A stretch of DNA of 64,000 nucleotides, taken from positions 1,984,001-2,048,000 of the forward strand of contig CM074814.1 of the NCBI GenBank assembly GCA_037447605.1, given 5' to 3'. Origin of the DNA: Zygnema circumcarinatum SAG 698-1b (Eukaryota > Plantae > Zygnematophyceae). Both the position numbers and the translations under genes were made by a program. Below the pieces are notes generated by a model. It was not told where the DNA came from. It ran no database searches and saw only the letters and a list, made by a program, of their open reading frames with translations. Shown in pieces: positions 54,871 through 64,000 of the stretch (positions are counted from its first letter, which is position 1; each line of letters starts with the position of its first letter).

Positions 54871-57752
54871 CTAATTCCTCCGCCGAATCCTCAAGAGCAG
54901 CCCAAAGTGGTCACTGGGAAGCACACGAAGTGTGACCGTTCGAGCCGGCAGCTTCGCTTTCAGCACCTTCTCATAGGTCAGGCCAGGAATGGCCTCTGTC
55001 CCGACCATATCTATGGCCTCAAGCTCAAAGTCATCCAAATGACAGAGCATCCGATCCACCCGCTGTTGCAGCCACCCCGTCAACATGTCGTTCGCCTTGG
55101 CGTCATAAGTGAAGCCAACCTGCACATTGCGAGCCGTCCCGTCCAGTCACGTTCATTGAAAATCTGCTGCATGTGACTGCTTCGCAATGCTTTACGTCCT
55201 ATATAACAATCAGTTGAACACGGAAAATTTTCCAGGGAAGCACTCTCTCCCAGCTGAACATCGATAATACTTTCACAGTCTCCACTCAATTTTTTCACCT
55301 CTTCCGGCTGCAGCTGTTCCCATGCGTCACACCACCCATAAGGGAGGGGCATGGGTCCATCTAATTTGTCATTCCAGTTCAAATCACCACAGAAGACGAC
55401 ATTCCTCATACAGCGGAGGGTATTCATGACTGTCTTGGCCTGCGCGACGCGCTCCTCACTGTACATCTGGCTCCATGTAGGAGGCTGAGGGCATGGGCTC
55501 TCGAGGTGAGCGTGGGCTACAACTAGGGGGCAATGCCCACTTAGCTCCAACCCCACCATGGCAAGTTCTCTTCCCATTATGGAGTTTTCAAAGGGTTCTC
55601 GATGCCATGTCTTCACAGGGAGCCTGCTAAGCTGCAAGGCCGGCCAATCAGGGACAAACGATGAAACGACTAATCAGCTTCTGCATATGCTTTCTTTGAG
55701 ACGGTTGCCTGCTATTTGAGTCCTGTGTCTGATTCGAACTAGGCACAGAACAATGCTGATAAGGCACAATGGACTTGATGCTGCAACACTCACCTGCATG
55801 ATAAAATACTGCCTTTTTGGAGCTTCTTCAGGAGAAACTGAGGACTGGTAGTGACGCCACCATTCGAATTTACAGAGGAGGTTATAAATTTTCGACGTTA
55901 CTTCCTGCACCATCATTCAACTCCATCTAGGATTTAGAAAAATGATGAAGAAATTCACTAGATCTATCAATTCAGGATCAAGTATCAACGAGGTATTCCT
56001 CGATTTCGCATATCATCGATCTTGGCAAGTCCATGGTCAATGTATAGGAAGAAGGACGGGGACATATGTTGTGATAGAGTTGTAACAGAAAGAATTATCG
56101 TACTAGAAAGTAGTAAGAAGGTGGAAAAAGGAGCTATTTGCAAAAACATCATCGTCATCGGCATTAACCCCAGCTACGAACTGCCAGTGGAGATAGGTAG
56201 ATAGAACGGATATGTGAACTGCAAATCGGTGAGCAAATTCGAATACAAAGGTGGTGGGTTTAGACACGATTTCCTACTAGGCGTACTTCCGGACTTGGTG
56301 AGCTATAGAGGCTCACCTGCAAACAAATGACATCGGGCATGTGCCGTTCAATGATTGCTCCTATCGCAGCCATGCGTTGTTCCAGCTCCACACTCTCGTT
56401 GAACCACACATTGTATGTCAAAATGCTGAGCGTATTGGTGTTACTGCTGCTGGCAACAGCATCACCCCGAGCCTTCGTTAAAGAAGGATGCCCAGCCTCC
56501 CCTTTTGTTGGTTTAGCTTCTTTCAAGGCTTCGGAAGGGCCGCCTGTGATCAAGGAACATAAAGCTGTGAGAAAGTGATGAAGTAAGTTCTATGAGCAGT
56601 CAGAACGGCTCTTCAATCCAAGTTGCGCCATTGAGACTACGAATGTGCAGAGACACCTCATTCTCCTAAATCTCTGGGCCTGAGGTCGTTTAAACAATAT
56701 GTGGTTCAGATCAAAGGAGCAACTATGCCAAGATACCCAAACATGGCCGGTATAATATTGGAACTATTCGAGGAGGAAAAGGTCGTCAATTGCAAAGGAC
56801 TAGACAAATAAAGCTCGTCCCATACTGCAAAATTTGGACGACGCCGTATTAAGGCCACTGGAAAATACTGTGCCATGACAATGATCTGTGCAACTTGTGA
56901 AAGCATTTCCAGCCCTCGATGTCCGCTAGAAAAAACTTGCATTGTCCGGATGGCAAGGAAAAAATCAAAAAGCATCGCACCTGATCGACCCGCCTTCTCT
57001 TGACGCGCCTTTCGCTCCGCATGCAGACTAGCCAGCAGCGTGTTCCCTGACTCTTCACTGCCGCAATTTCCTGCTCCCCCCAACGACAGAGAGCCTTCGT
57101 CTCGAGCTCCTGCTTCAGTAGGACTCGCAAGATTCCCTTGCGATGAGGCCATGATGAATGCACGTTTCTTGTCTCCCAACGTTACATCACTATCAACAGC
57201 TGTGCTAAAATTCCTTTTCAATCCTCCTGCGCTTTCACCGGAGACGAGCCAGTTATTGAATGAAGCTGAACCTGAATTGCGTGATAGGAGAACGTTTGAA
57301 GTAACCCGTTCAGGCGAAGCACGAACTTCAGGCCTGGAGGCTCCTTCATGTTGCAATACCTTCGAGCTAGTTGCTCCAAGGCCGCCAGCACTGCCTTTCC
57401 CGCCCCTGCAGCCGGTGTCCAGACCTGAAGCTTCACTTACCGAATCCTTTCCACCTTTCCTGTTTATTTCTACACCCTCTACTGACTCAGGATCTCCTAC
57501 GTCCTTCAAGTCATCTCCTGGAACGCCTGCAGCATACTCTCCGACCAAATCATGACTGTCATCCAGCCGTTCTTTCAAGCAGACTTCACATACCGTTCCG
57601 TCCCCAGATCTATTCAAGTATGTGCAAGACCTGCAGGCCCATTCCCTCTCAGAACTTCCCCTTCCGGCAGTGCCGCAGACCTCGCACACAACTCCCCCAT
57701 GGTTGATGAACGTACAAGCTGGACAGGCCCAGTCTTCTCCCTCCTGCGCCAT
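54871..57752 (-). CDS. TDP2: Tyrosyl-DNA phosphodiesterase 2 (EEP family) with two N-terminal RanBP2-type zinc fingers
   Basis: Exons 57752-56981, 56543-56317, 55904-55794, 55631-55299, 55119-54871. WACPACTFIN..CEVC and WACRSCTYLN..CEVC; ILTYNVWF, CLQEV, AHLES, CGDLNW, VDR, PSDHFG. Confidence 0.9.
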
Positions 57753-57943
57753 GGCTCCACAGCAGGGCCGTCCTCCAAGATGACGTTGCTGTGGGAGCAA
57801 GTAGCTGGCTGCAAGGTGCCACGTGTCGCCACAAGCGCAGAGGCGAGGCTGCCATGGCGTCCTGAAACAGCGCCGTTCTTTGCAGGGTAGTTGAGAAGAT
57901 TCAAGAAATTTCCATGTTGACGGAGTGTAGTTTTACGGCGGGT

Positions 57944-58064: not shown

Positions 58065-58685
58065 CTACTTGATCGGACGACCTTAAAAGTACGTCAACTG
58101 CGGAGACAACTCAGGGTTCAGGTCAGGCACTTTTTTTCTTGCTTGGGCAGTTTCGCGGTGATCTCAAGACGTGCATGCAGTGGTTTTAGACTTGCTAAGA
58201 AGAACAATTTGGCATTGAATTCACGATGATGATGCCACCATCAAATGGTGCATGGACATCAACAACATGGAGAATCACGAGAAATCGCTAACAAAGGACC
58301 AAAGTTCGCAAGAAAAAAGCTATGAGCTGAACTTTGTTTGTAGGCCCAACAACACGGTTCTAGAGGAGGTTTGAATACACGAGTTGGACTTTCAGTTGGC
58401 AAGCTTTGGAATTGCACTTATTTGTCTTTGTCTGTATTCAGAGGGCATGGCATGGAAGTAGAGCTTGTAACTGTGGAATGTAATCGCACCACTGCACGCA
58501 AAGGGTCAGTGAAGTGAGTGAGTGAGTGTCAGATGACGGACCAAACGGTTGCCAGAAGCCGAGTCTTCATAAGTCAGAATATCGAACACTGCTTCACATT
58601 TTCTAAACATAAAAACAAAAAAGCACTCTATTACTCATGGGCTGAACATGAAATGTGCGACGATGTGACTTCATCCATCTCCTTT

Positions 58686-59090
58686 CACCTCACCCCAATT
58701 GACCTCACCCTAATTCACCTCATCCCAATTCACCTCATCCCAATTCACCTCATCCCAATTCACCTCACCCCAATTCACCTCACTCCAATTCACCTCATCC
58801 CAATTCACCTCACCCCAATTCACCTCACCCCAATTGACCTCACCCTAATTCACCTCACCCCAATTGACCTCACCCTAATTCACCTCATCCCAATTCACCT
58901 CATCCCAATTCACCTCACCCCAATTCACCTCATCCCAATTCACCTCACCCCAATTCACCTCACCCCAATTCACCTCACCCCAATTCACCTCACCCCAATT
59001 CACCTCACCCCAATTCACCTCACTCCAATTCACCTCATCCCAATTCACCTCATCCCAATTCACCTCACCCCAATTCACGTCACTCCAATT
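58686..59090. repeat. 15-bp minisatellite (CACCTCACCCCAATT) x27
   Basis: 405 bp read directly; variants CATCCC, CACTCC, GACCTC and CCCTAATT. Confidence 0.97.
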
Positions 59091-59240
59091 AGCAGTTGAA
59101 CGGCGAATGGGGGCTGAAACGGAGGCGCACATAGAACCGCCTGAACTTCCACTCGCAGGAATCCAAACTCTTTCCAAAACTTGAGCGCCGTCGCTTGCAG
59201 GCTCCAGCACCTTCGACCAGAGGGATGCCCTCCAATGACG

Positions 59241-59510: not shown

Positions 59511-59684
59511 ACACTGCCAGTTGGTTGTCGGGAAAATGGAAAGGATGAGTCAAACTACTGCTGCAGCCTGCTGCTTCCGGGTGATTTCGGAGGCAGAGGG
59601 GAGAATTTTGATAGTATTTATTCGACTGGAAGCATCCCGGTGGTGCTTGAGCGGGTTGCGAGAAAGAGGACGATCTCAGCATCC

Positions 59685-61795
59685 ATGGTTGTCATGGCGA
59701 GGTTGAGCCCTAAGTTTGTTGGCCTGCTGGTCTCTGTTCTTGCATTGTCTTTCTCCCCTTCACTTGCTCAGCTTCCGACTGCACCGCCCCTTCCGGTTCA
59801 GTTCTCTGAGAAGGAGTTGCTTCAGGTAAATGGTCTCACGGGCTGATTTCTTCCACTCTTGCACGTCTTATGTACTGTATGCACGCACTCTATGACGTCA
59901 AATGAATATCTGGTTGGTTATGTTCAAGTGTTTGAGCTCGTTTGGTTGAAATTACTGCATGGTTGCAGTTTTTGACAAATGACTTTCTGTGGGTTGCAAT
60001 GATTATACAACTTTCAATATGATAGATGCTTTAGTGCATGTAGTCTCGGATCATGCTCTGCGCATGCCATAGCTAATTACTGCGCTTTCCAATTGATTGT
60101 ATGAAACTGTAATTAACTGTGAGACTTTGAAAAGTTTGATGTGTGTACCAAATTTAACAAGGAGGAAATGGAGCGTCACATTCTGACAATGAATAGGCTC
60201 CACACTCTTGTCCACTTTATGCTTCTTTTTTATATGCTCTATTGACGCTGGTTTCGTTACGACTGATGAAGAAATCGCAATGTCGTGTGCAGTTTGTGCT
60301 GAATCTGGAGTACCTGGAGACAGAATTTTTCTTGGTTTCGGCATATGGCTACGGCCTTGATGGCATCAACTCCACTCTCGCTGGTGGCGGTCCTGCTCCC
60401 GTTGGCGGGCGACAGGCTTCCTTGTCACCTCAAGTTCGAGCAATGGCGGAAGTTATGGGTTTGCAGGAGGTGGATCATGTTACGTGAGTACTAAAGCGTC
60501 TAAAGTCGTACCAATCCCTTGTCCAGTTACTTCTATCAGTGTATGGGAGGAGCTGTCTCTACACAGTTGAAAGGAGTAAACAGCAGCTGAGAACAAGTTT
60601 GCGACAGCTGGAGTTGGCGATGCTGTGATTGACCATTTGTTCCAGTCGCTCAACAGTATCCACGAGTGTTTATTTTGCGTACGCCTGTGCAGAGCAATTC
60701 GTGAATTTTTGGGGCCAGATGCAAATCCTCGACCGCTGATCGATCTTGGAAATTCGTGGAGCCAGTTTTTCAAGTTTGCAACTGGAAACTCGTCTGTGAA
60801 CTTTTCGCCATACACGGATGACCTAAGTTGGCTAATTGCTGCCTACGCCCTGCCATATGTAGGCTTGACGGGTTATGTGGGCACAAACCCCCTTTTGCAG
60901 TCGGTCGATGCTAAGAAGGTACAGTTTGTTTCCTCGAAATTTGCAGCACCCCCTGCTCTTGTTTGCTGTAGTTTTAAGGCTTTTTTCTCTGCGGAAATCT
61001 ATGAGATGTGACATTTGTTCTGTCAAAAGATGAGGATGCCCATTTGTTAGCACAGCTCATTTCATAATATATCTTTTTTTTTTTTTTTTTTGAGACTGCA
61101 GCTTGTTGCAGGTCTGCTTGCAGTTGAGTCAGGCCAAGATGCGATGATACGGCTCAAGCTCTGGCTGAACAGTGACTACCTTGTGCCGCCTTATGGACAG
61201 CCCGTCTATGCTCTCACAGAGAACGTCTCCAGAGTAAGCAGCCTATTTCAGTCCTTGAAGGTTTAGCTGGCCTTCCTTTCTACAGGCTGCAACCTTAGAA
61301 TAATCGACCAATGAAAGCTGTAATTTGGAAGGCGTGAATGGTTTCAAGTACTACCCTCACGGTTTTCATGTTAAATCCATGCAGGCCCGCAATTGCTTGG
61401 ATGGTTCCCTTACCATCGATGATGAGGGCATCTTGGTTCCTCCGCAGCTGGGAGCTCATGCCAACACAACTAACAACATCCTTTCTGCCAACGCTTGGTC
61501 CTTGGCCTACGCCCGGAATCCGGAGCAAATTCTTCGTGTAGTGTATGGCAGTGGCGCTTCAAACATCACAGGAGGTTTTTTCCCAAACGGAGCCACAGGC
61601 AACATTGCCAAGTACTTCCTCACGAACAACACTGCTCCGCCTCCAACTCCCCCTGGAGAATCTCCACCAAGGGAGCTCTATTGTCCTCCTCTTCCACAGC
61701 AGCCGCCGCCAACTCCTTGTACCAATCCCCCACCTTCTCCCCCCACTTTACCTTGTACCAGTCCTCCGCCTTCTCCATCTGGAGGCCCACCCTGA
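59685..61795 (+). CDS. Desiccation-related protein PCC13-62-like (secreted ferritin-like fold) with a C-terminal Pro-rich tail
   Basis: Exons 59685-59825, 60293-60483, 60693-60918, 61102-61233, 61385-61795. Signal peptide; LNLEYLETEFF, QEVDH, PYVGLTGYVGTNP, LLAVESGQDAMIR, DEGILVP..LGA, NILSAN..SLAYAR, GGFFPNGA.G.IA. Confidence 0.9.
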
Positions 61796-62227
61796 CGCTC
61801 CAACATCTTTTTCCCTGCAGTTTCAGTGACAAACAAACCGGCGGACTTTTCTATCCTCTCCGACTAGACCTTGACTTTCCTCTGTTGGCTTCATCACCTT
61901 GGCAACCCTGATGCCGGCGGTGTTTGACGCTGTCAAACAGCGTCAAGGCTCGACAGCCAGTGCTTAGATTACTGCATGTTGTGAGAATGGTGAGTTTTTG
62001 TAAAGCACACGAAACAACAAGATCACGATGAATGATTCGCAGTAGGTCACAGAGTTGGTTACAACTGTTGTACTGTATGTTAGTTGAAAACTGGCTAGCC
62101 ACTGCCTCTACTATGAAGCTTGCAGATGGCCGCTTCTTCTTGTATATACATCTTCATGATGAACTATGACAAATGGATGGAACCTGCATCTGGAATGCTG
62201 CCTACATCTGGGTTTGGCATGATGCAA

Positions 62228-63789
62228 CTAAAAGGAGAGCAAATCTGGTAACGGCTGAGGTGTGACAGTTGTCACGTTTCGCGTAGTGGCTGCAGTCATT
62301 GGGACAGTGTCTCGTTTGTCGCGCTGTGTATCCATCTGTCTCATGGCCTGCTCGAGGAAGGCCTTCGCCTGCACAAAAAAAACAGGAATCCACCGCTGCT
62401 TTGATTCATGATTCCTTTCTAAATTACATTCGCACGACACCAACGTGTACCGTTGGTTTCCTCACCACATTCGCTGTTAACCACGGTTTCTGGAGAGCTT
62501 TGGAAGTATTTTCGTTGAAGCAAGCTGAAAAAATTACCATGTCCCGCATGAATCTTCCCTTTACTACATCTGCAAATAGTAGAACTTTCATCCTCATTTT
62601 GCTGCTACTGTTGGCAAACTGGAGACTGGCTACAATGGGTCGACGGCAGAGCCAACCTTCCAGCAATTCTGTAAGGATCACATTCGTATTTCTTTTAAGC
62701 GGATGAATATCTCACCCTCAGAACTTCTTTGTACACCTGGTCCTTTGAATGAATTAGGCTCCTCTTCGTCTCGCCTTGCTCCAAAAGTTTTTCAAAAACG
62801 CTCATGCTGGAACATTTTCGAAGGATGCTTGCTGCTTCCTCCATATTGTATAGAAGGGGCATCATTATAGTCCTACAAGTGATGTATCCATACTAACATG
62901 AGCGCTTGAATAAATAAACAAAGGCGGTGAATGTTAAGAAATTTGAAAAGCACATGGCCAGTTTTTTGAGAAGGCAAAAATCTCCGCGAATTGAACAAGG
63001 CCTCCCTTGACTCGAATGTGTTCATTGTGATGGCAGCCTTTGCGCCACTTGTTGTTGCGAGCATATTGATAGTATTTGGTAAATATAAATCAGAAAATTT
63101 AGCATATATTAGGGGGGGTCAGACTTATCCCGGAGCGTACTACGCTCCGAATTTCCCGAATTCAAAGTTTCGTCTACGAATTACGGGTCGGGATCCGCGG
63201 CTCTGTCGAACACAGCCGTACCGAAATGCGTACCTAGCCAATGCTTAATTCACCCGACAGGCTTACTAAATTGATTTGGCCATGTGTTAAGTTAAGTCTG
63301 ACCCGCCCTATTATTGGCTTCGGCAAAGCAGGCTTAAATTTCTGATTACGTACCTAGTTTCCTCAGCCTTGCCAAAGCCAATGGGAAGCTTTTTTTGTGC
63401 AAGCTCCAAAACTGGACGCAACTGCTGGGCCTCGTGTGTCACTTCATTGCAGTGGCCTCGGAAGACTTTCACATCGACTACCGCATCTTGAAGCGCTTCA
63501 ATGAGATTCAGGGCCATTTGAAGGCTGTCTTGGTTTGCCATCGAAAAGAAAAGTAGAAAAAACAATCAATCCAGGAAGATACCAATTCGAACGATTGCTT
63601 AAAGCGTAAGCAGAAGCAAGCTCCAAACGCCTCGCTCCCTGTACAGCCTACCACACTCAAACATACATAAAAAAACTGGATTTAAAGGCCACCAAGGCAT
63701 CCAACAAAGAATCCTGATTACAAACGCCACTTTCTTCCTGACTGCAGCAGCCCCTCTGCTGATACAGCCAATAGCTGCGACGCCGCCAT
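62228..63789 (-). CDS. Small stand-alone helical-bundle protein resembling MLKL N-terminal / RPW8 / U-box UND domains
   Basis: Core exons 63541-63354, 62872-62737, 62368-62228 splice in frame to 154 aa (MANQDSLQMALNLIEALQDAVVDVKVFRGHCNEVTHEAQQLRPVLE...LYNMEEAASILRKCSSMSVFEKLL...). A possible upstream exon starts at gccATGGCG 63789. The domain call is pattern recognition only. Confidence 0.6.
63111..63309. mobile_element. MITE (199 bp) in an intron of the helical-bundle gene
   Basis: TIR AGGGGGGGTCAGACTTA / TAAGTCTGACCCGCCCT; ATT duplicated at 63108-63110 and 63310-63312. Confidence 0.85.
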
Positions 63790-64000
63790 GGCGCCCCATT
63801 GGCGCCGCCATGGCGCCCCCTTGGCTGATGGCGGCCCTCCAGACCGACCTCCTCGCGCCGTCACCATACCGCCACCAATCCGATACATTCGATATATTGT
63901 AATTCGTATCGGGCTCCTGCGAACAGAGCCCCAAATTGTAGGGACTTTCTGGGAACACACCACAAGTATCTGCATACACACCTCAAATCTAGATGTAGCC

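Follow-up and report, generated by a model that had tools for sequence, protein, structure and literature searches.

An expressed Zygnema gene for a small protein that is very probably a free-standing four-helix bundle related to liverwort DUF7792 proteins

A four-helix bundle common to MLKL, RPW8/CC-R domains, CC-NLRs, MCA channels and PUB ligases stands at the centre of cell-death and Ca2+ signalling in both plants and animals. Stand-alone RPW8/HR proteins exist in Arabidopsis, and RPW8.2 has an N-terminal hydrophobic anchor. Catalogues of free-standing MCAfunc/DUF7792 proteins already reach from Chara to the angiosperms (PMC8049495; names in UniRef): in Nishii et al. 2021, proteins of the "MCAfunc only" kind (type II) were counted for Chara, Marchantia, Physcomitrella and seed plants. 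The RPW8/HR proteins have been described as MLKL homologues (PMC6684095). The gene analysed here lies on the minus strand of a 64,000-nucleotide stretch of Zygnema circumcarinatum SAG 698-1b (assembly GCA_037447605.1, contig CM074814.1, positions 1,984,001 to 2,048,000), called the window, whose own numbering is used throughout. A sequence-only reading of the window had proposed a stand-alone MLKL/RPW8-like four-helix protein at this place.

The analysis revealed an expressed gene of three coding exons whose product of 161 amino acids is very probably a cytosolic protein that consists of one four-helix bundle and a tail of about 30 residues and is an orthologue of the stand-alone DUF7792 proteins of liverworts. 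The protein would belong to a superfamily of streptophyte bundles, other members of which form the heads of MLKL-type kinases of plants (MCAfunc/MLKL_N), of RPW8/CC-R proteins, of U-box ligases of the PUB type (UND) and of proteins with ARM repeats (DUF7792). At the sequence level its nearest family is DUF7792. With no brace, no kinase and no MLKL_N match, the protein does not count as an MLKL; by Pfam and by anchor it is not an RPW8 protein, nor is it an MCA protein. The explanation as a whole, which joins this identity to a docking mechanism, was given a probability of about 0.5.

Transcription and splicing of the gene

The exon chain was checked against transcript contigs from public RNA runs, five of which, from two studies, held about 70% of the words sampled from the gene. 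Such contigs give neither strand, ends nor expression level. Both introns were removed at exactly the predicted bases in the contigs of two studies: X1 (1976 nucleotides) spanned both joints and X3 the first one, and the joints read CT..AC on the plus strand, equivalent to GT..AG for this minus-strand gene. The gene is thus transcribed and spliced exactly as predicted, because spliced joints arise only from RNA. In X3 the second intron was retained, contig 13 being continuous from 61385 to 62871; read-through of this intron (open reading frame (ORF) 62695-62865) would stop the protein 6 residues beyond exon 2. X2 covered part of intron 1 at low depth. At 62374, in the poly-T tract, X3 also had one A/T more than the genome, which probably reflects a difference between strains.

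The splice sites of both introns are canonical. Intron 1 has the donor AG/GTACGT (63354/63353) and the acceptor TTGTAG/G (62873/62872), and intron 2, which contains a strong polypyrimidine tract, has the donor AGG/GTGAGA (62716/62715) and the acceptor TTTTTTGTGCAG/G (62369/62368). The phase is 2 at the end of exon 1 and 0 at the end of exon 2, and the frame stays open until the TAG at 62230-62228. The product length, estimated beforehand at about 154 amino acids, was computed as 161, made up of 62 residues, 1 junction arginine, 52 and 46. Splicing on to exons of a larger protein was looked for, and the contigs X1, X2 and X3 showed no more splicing of the gene and no further coding exons past the TAG at 62228. 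The absence of a kinase, NB-ARC or U-box partner, claimed from the sequence, is therefore upheld by transcripts that end after exon 3, and the orthologues are small stand-alone proteins as well.

An optional first exon beginning at ATG 63789 had been suggested. It was refuted for these transcripts; beyond 63353 the contigs follow the genome without a break, as far as 63789 in X3 and 63830 in X1, and since they run unspliced through the leader, this segment is not an exon. ATG 63789 opens an upstream ORF of 23 codons (63789-63718). A longer one of 70 codons starts at ATG 63811 (63811-63599), is in frame with the main ORF and stops 58 nucleotides before the main ATG; its 70-residue peptide had no Pfam match. 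The leader holds 6 upstream ATGs in total. Two of these, 63811 and 63789, carry G both at -3 and at +4, while the main ATG has T at -3.

Relatives and predicted fold

The searches with the window were run exon by exon. The Pfam family DUF7792 (PF25055) has a gathering cut-off of 27 bits and a profile length of 120, and exon 1 alone matched it with 16.4 bits (E 0.01), residues 5-47 falling on profile positions 2-44. For exon 2 alone no DUF7792 match was reported in the Pfam scan. A phmmer search with exon 1 over 1.84 billion representatives gave four matches with E values of 1e-4 to 4e-4. The relative of most use was R1sor_025294 (P0002), a 134-residue protein of the liverwort Riccia sorocarpa carrying the UniRef name "DUF7792 domain-containing protein". 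Exon 1 aligned to its residues 3-50 (46% identity over 48 amino acids, E 4e-14) and exon 2, independently of exon 1, to its residues 66-99 (59% identity over 34 amino acids, E 5e-13); exon 3 had no significant match to its C-terminus. A profile search also found, along with several exon-1 fragments, a 188-residue unnamed product of Calypogeia fissa (P0005). Both liverwort proteins scored above the DUF7792 cut-off, P0002 with 34.3 bits and P0005 with 29.6 bits. Residues 4-92 of P0002 correspond to profile positions 3-92, so that the match is colinear from the N-terminus, as it is for window exon 1. The second Pfam match of P0005 was DUF7032.

The gene structure is in accordance with these matches. 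At the Riccia locus the coding sequence is likewise divided into three exons, with both introns at the positions seen in the window gene. A homologue on a public contig (L002) shares both the positions and the phases of the introns, with an exon 2 of exactly 52 codons and an exon 3 that starts AEAFLK, and its product is a stand-alone protein of about 158 amino acids. Judged from its sequence, the window gene is an orthologue of the small stand-alone DUF7792 proteins of liverworts, which form a conserved family of small partner-less proteins. When exon 1 alone was searched by features in the Atlas, the clusters returned, as leads, included MLKL_N, DUF7792 and MCAfunc ones.

Several other candidates were set aside. 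The 192-residue protein P0001 (E 1e-4), which contains four YRKNHCTEIT-like repeats, was a chance match inflated by its repeats, with no colinear alignment and no DUF7792 match. The entries P0003, P0004, P0006 and P0007 are not small proteins in their own right; they come from short contigs, where exon 1 is read past its donor and on into the intron (..R-Y-V/K..), and an 84-residue ORF of the window likewise is exon 1 read through the donor. The PDB sequence matches of exon 1 or of the family profile (TSG101, ATRIP and keratin, E 0.2-2) and the weak Pfam matches to NYD-SP28, DUF7550 and IKBKB_SDD were dismissed as chance. A word-index protein search with exon 1 found nothing, its length window of 34-108 amino acids leaving out full-length relatives, and the window's own protein was in neither of the two large protein collections searched. 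The scan of the window found no paralogue of any exon and no second copy of either intron.

The helices were mapped on the window protein through the alignments to P0002 and lie at about residues 6-20, 25-51, 62-85 and 95-131, helix 4 spanning the junction of exons 2 and 3. Exon 1 encodes the conserved motif D-[AV]-[KR]-x-[FY]-R-x-H-C, and exon 2 encodes an L-R-K-C motif in helix 3 and a Q-G-E-T-K-R motif. Exon 3 starts A-K-A-F-L, of which A-x-A-F-L is common to the L002 homologue, and continues as a non-conserved Thr/Pro-rich tail of about 30 residues, which is probably disordered. The protein carries no net charge (0). Its first helix, acidic and markedly amphipathic, has the highest hydrophobic moment, and no segment of the 161 residues is of transmembrane grade, the top 19-residue Kyte-Doolittle mean being 1.13, in helix 1. 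The amphipathic helical character read from the sequence was thereby confirmed.

The fold was analysed on models of the Riccia orthologue P0002, for which the AlphaFold2 alignment was that of the family, with the window exons as separate rows. The AlphaFold2 model (mean predicted local distance difference test score 79.5, predicted template modelling score 0.68) was a four-helix bundle, with helices at 4-18, 23-49, 59-82, 85-90 and 92-128, four of them long. The Foldseek search against the PDB placed the NRG1.1 CC-R domain at rank 1 (E 0.044, template modelling (TM) scores 0.56/0.63, 17-20% identity) and also returned the MLKL executioner domain (query-normalised TM 0.64-0.70, with 0.70 for 2msv); no match reached E 0.001 or better. 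In VIA-align, human MLKL gave Z 10.6-11.5 with 2.4-2.6 Å over 116-119 residues (6zz1: Z 11.5, 2.4 Å, 116 residues), mouse MLKL (4btf) gave Z 11.3 with 2.0 Å over 100 residues and AtMLKL3 gave Z 10.1, all three superpositions beginning at the first residue. The other values were Z 10.9 for NRC2, Z 10.5-10.7 for the Cbl N-terminal bundle, Z 10.4 for the Rx coiled-coil (CC) domain, Z 9.0-9.7 for the NRG1 CC-R domain and Z 11.8 for the unrelated IncA. The Cbl match fits the annotation of plant MLKL bundles as MCAfunc or Cbl-N in a 2026 preprint.

The independent ESM Atlas model of P0002 had a TM score of 0.82 to the N-terminal domains of plant MCAfunc kinases and of 0.75-0.80 to DUF7792-ARM proteins. 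By features, the Atlas cluster nearest to P0002 (0.94, 198 of 256 features) was a 154-residue stand-alone "MCAfunc domain-containing protein" with 189 members; an RPW8 cluster followed at 0.92 and an MLKL_N/DUF7792/RPW8 cluster at 0.91. The Atlas shape search with the AlphaFold2 model returned generic bacterial helices only. The proposed stand-alone MLKL/RPW8-like bundle thus holds at the level of the superfamily, through the fold of the orthologue and its language-model features, and fails as a direct match to the MLKL_N or RPW8 family.

Action of the protein and the alternatives weighed

The action of the protein is tentatively put, at a little under even odds, as that of a free-standing docking or regulatory bundle. 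The amphipathic helices would bind a partner protein or a membrane surface, and no autonomous pore would be formed by the protein; the leader, laden with upstream ATGs, would hold its dose low. This action was favoured because the sequence family sits on ARM and U-box scaffolds (DUF7792 in the Atlas is found on ARM-repeat proteins such as ARIA), because the protein has no basic patch and no membrane anchor, and because an inhibitory domain is absent from a protein whose gene is represented by contigs in five runs from two studies.

Several observations weigh against the explanation as a whole. Exon 1 alone stays under the Pfam cut-off for DUF7792 (16.4 vs 27 bits), and the placement in the family comes from matches of single exons and from orthologues with an identity of 46-59%. 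The Pfam scans, which were run to E 10 with HMMER filters that drop very weak matches, gave no match to MLKL_N (PF22215), RPW8 (PF05659) or MCAfunc (PF19584) for the three exons, P0002 or P0005. The family profile found no PDB sequence match. The Z scores of 9-12 lie within the helical-bundle background, in which values below about 13 are common according to the tool, and the best structural neighbours of P0002 are executioner domains. A small bundle that is active has a precedent in the RPW8/HR proteins, which stand alone. Lastly, the 6 upstream ATGs, 2 of them in strong context, make the protein yield uncertain.

Some of these points favour a minimal executor, in which the free bundle would oligomerise on a membrane and permeabilise it or conduct cations, like the MLKL bundle, the NRG1/ADR1 CC-R domains and the CC resistosomes, and would be controlled through transcription and the upstream-ORF-laden leader and not by a fused sensor domain. 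The MLKL executioner domain and the NRG1 CC-R domain are the best PDB neighbours of P0002 and cover the full domain from the first residue, the orthologue lies close to the RPW8 cluster by features, and the leader offers six upstream ATGs and the 70-codon ORF. The likeness of helical-bundle folds, however, carries no functional information by the tool's own caveat, and the number of upstream ATGs is about the random expectation for a leader of this length. The composition, with zero net charge, shows no basic lipid-binding patch and no anchor like that of RPW8.2, neither MLKL_N nor RPW8 was matched in Pfam, and the DUF7792 family is known from ARM-repeat proteins, not from killers. The executor is therefore regarded as unlikely. 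A broader version is less likely still: that a free-standing MLKL/RPW8/MCAfunc bundle has survived from an alga-grade streptophyte to the liverworts, acting alone on membranes in cell death or Ca2+ entry, its dose gated by the leader and by antisense overlap with the convergent Ferritin_2/PCC13-62-like gene. If true, this would be a minimal executor predating the fusion to kinases, NB-ARC or U-box domains.

The protein might instead be an unrelated helical one, a generic coiled coil or a bundle convergent in shape, the DUF7792 matches of the orthologues being marginal false positives that come from helical composition. The orthologues score just 2.6-7 bits over the cut-off, many unrelated bundles (IncA, talin, FAT, designed proteins) reach Z 8-12, the Atlas shape search was generic and the PDB profile search blank. 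This is judged very improbable: the Pfam match spans positions 3-92 of 120 from the N-terminus in the two orthologues and window exon 1, a single family or clan accounts for eight of the ten best Atlas feature matches, nine plant clusters of MCAfunc, DUF7792 or DUF7032 are matched by the ESM model with TM 0.75-0.82, and exon 1 on its own drew the same kind of clusters by features. It is also conceivable, at the lowest likelihood of all, that the gene is transcribed and barely translated or decaying, so that its RNA matters rather than its protein, or nothing does. The leader is long and holds six upstream ATGs, of which 63811 and 63789 have a stronger context than the main ATG, intron 2 is retained in X3 and sequence of intron 1 is present in X2, an antisense overlap with the neighbour is possible, the protein is missing from both large collections and three runs of one study hold none of the gene's words. 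Against this, the frame is intact over three exons, amino-acid conservation is limited to the exons, and the intron positions and phases are common to homologues just 43-59% identical, a pattern to be expected only with selection on the protein. The orthologous docking or regulatory bundle was therefore kept as the best explanation.

Surroundings of the gene and comparison with known systems

The features of the gene are collected in Table 1.

Table 1. Window coordinates of the bundle gene and of the stretch that follows it
Feature	Positions	Strand	Details
5' leader, unspliced	63542..63830	-	at least 289 nucleotides; colinear with the genome in contigs X1 (to 63830) and X3 (to 63789)
Coding exon 1	63354..63541	-	ATG 63541; 62 codons + 2 bases; helices 1 and 2
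Intron 1, 481 nucleotides, GT-AG	62873..63353	-	joint 62871/63353 in X1 and X3
Coding exon 2	62716..62872	-	1 base + 52 codons; helix 3, short helix, start of helix 4
Intron 2, 347 nucleotides, GT-AG	62369..62715	-	joint 62367/62715 in X1; retained in X3
Coding exon 3	62228..62368	-	46 codons + TAG; end of helix 4, then tail
Intergenic stretch	61796..62227		gapless contig cover linking the bundle gene and the Ferritin_2 gene

Intron 1 contains an insert resembling a miniature inverted-repeat transposable element (63088-63347) with terminal inverted repeats of 27 nucleotides (63101-63127 and 63293-63319, 85%) and an outer 16-nucleotide pair. Transcript contigs that stem from other loci accumulate at 63209-63293 and have loose ends to either side, which makes this insert a member of a dispersed, transcribed repeat family; the window has no second copy of it.

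The convergent gene on the plus strand (exons at about 59640-61795, stop 61795) encodes a Ferritin_2 domain by Pfam, the family of the PCC13-62-type proteins. The distance of about 430 base pairs given for this neighbour was borne out, with 432 base pairs between stop 61795 and stop 62228. The contigs X1, X2 and X3 are continuous from 61385 to 62367 or beyond, and the plus-strand intron 61234-61384 (GT..AG) is removed alongside the minus-strand introns. The 3' untranslated regions of the two genes overlap or abut, since the contigs cross the intergenic stretch unbroken with the introns of each gene removed on its own strand, and the genes possibly form a natural antisense pair. The last exon of the Ferritin_2 gene (61620-61795) encodes a Pro-rich tail, PPPTPP...PPPSPP, like that of hydroxyproline-rich wall proteins and with no Pfam match.

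The linkage recurs on a public-run contig of another organism (L003). There a bundle homologue at 6-406 on the minus strand lies about 1 kb from a PCC13-62-like gene at 1469-1747 on the plus strand, whose signal-peptide exon and next exon resemble those of the window neighbour (59640-59846). That pair is arranged head to head (divergent), whereas the window pair is tail to tail. A tandem repeat at 58518-59099, in the interval that separates the Ferritin_2 gene from the nearest gene upstream of it, is open on both strands, with LTPIHL/IPIHL-type units on the plus strand and GEVNW/DEVNW units on the minus strand. At 56260-57800 on the minus strand, a piece starting LSILTYNVWFNE comes after ORFs in which a zinc-finger-like motif, W-x-C-x2-C...C-x-V-C, occurs twice; together they resemble a gene with a RanBP2-type zinc finger and a TDP2-type endonuclease/exonuclease/phosphatase domain.

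Among the described systems, MLKL has an N-terminal four-helix executioner domain of about 120 residues, on which the P0002 model superposes with 2.0-2.9 Å over 100-125 residues at Z 10-11.5. The identity is 10-13%, and the window protein, with about 30 tail residues after helix 4, has neither brace nor pseudokinase. RPW8.1/8.2 and the HR proteins are likewise stand-alone bundle proteins of similar size. They differ in that the window protein has no RPW8 Pfam match, no N-terminal membrane anchor and no C-terminal RPW8/HR repeats. The DUF7792-ARM proteins, for example ARM REPEAT PROTEIN INTERACTING WITH ABF2, belong to the same Pfam family as the orthologues and resemble them in the N-terminal domain (TM 0.75-0.80), and the N-terminal domains of the PUB U-box ligases (UND, PUB10_N, DUF7032) are related through the DUF7032 match of P0005. 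In these proteins ARM repeats and/or a U-box follow the bundle, whereas the window protein carries nothing there. MCA channels differ in that the window gene leaves no room for PLAC8.

Like the window protein, the MCAfunc-only proteins and those of the 154-residue Atlas cluster consist of a bundle that stands free, with no U-box, ARM, PLAC8 or kinase attached. The window exons and the orthologues differ from them in having no Pfam MCAfunc match; a distant relation is likely, as the nearest Atlas feature cluster carries MCAfunc in 57% of its members. The closest likeness is to the Riccia and Calypogeia proteins, which are small, consist of the bundle alone and share the motifs D-A/V-K-x-F-R-x-H-C, L-R-K-C and Q-G-E-T-K, the Riccia gene also in exon layout and intron positions. 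The differences are an identity of 46-59% in the conserved blocks, unrelated C-terminal tails and, at the Riccia locus, the absence of synteny with the window and of any PCC13-62-like neighbour within 8 kb on either side. The kind is already known, since MCAfunc-only proteins were counted in 2021, the 189-member Atlas cluster exists and the Riccia orthologue was already named by its domain, and the locus alone leaves the picture unchanged. What is new is a verified member of this known kind: an expressed stand-alone copy with clear liverwort orthologues and conserved exon structure, which at 161 residues and with no partner domain is a small, clonable test case.

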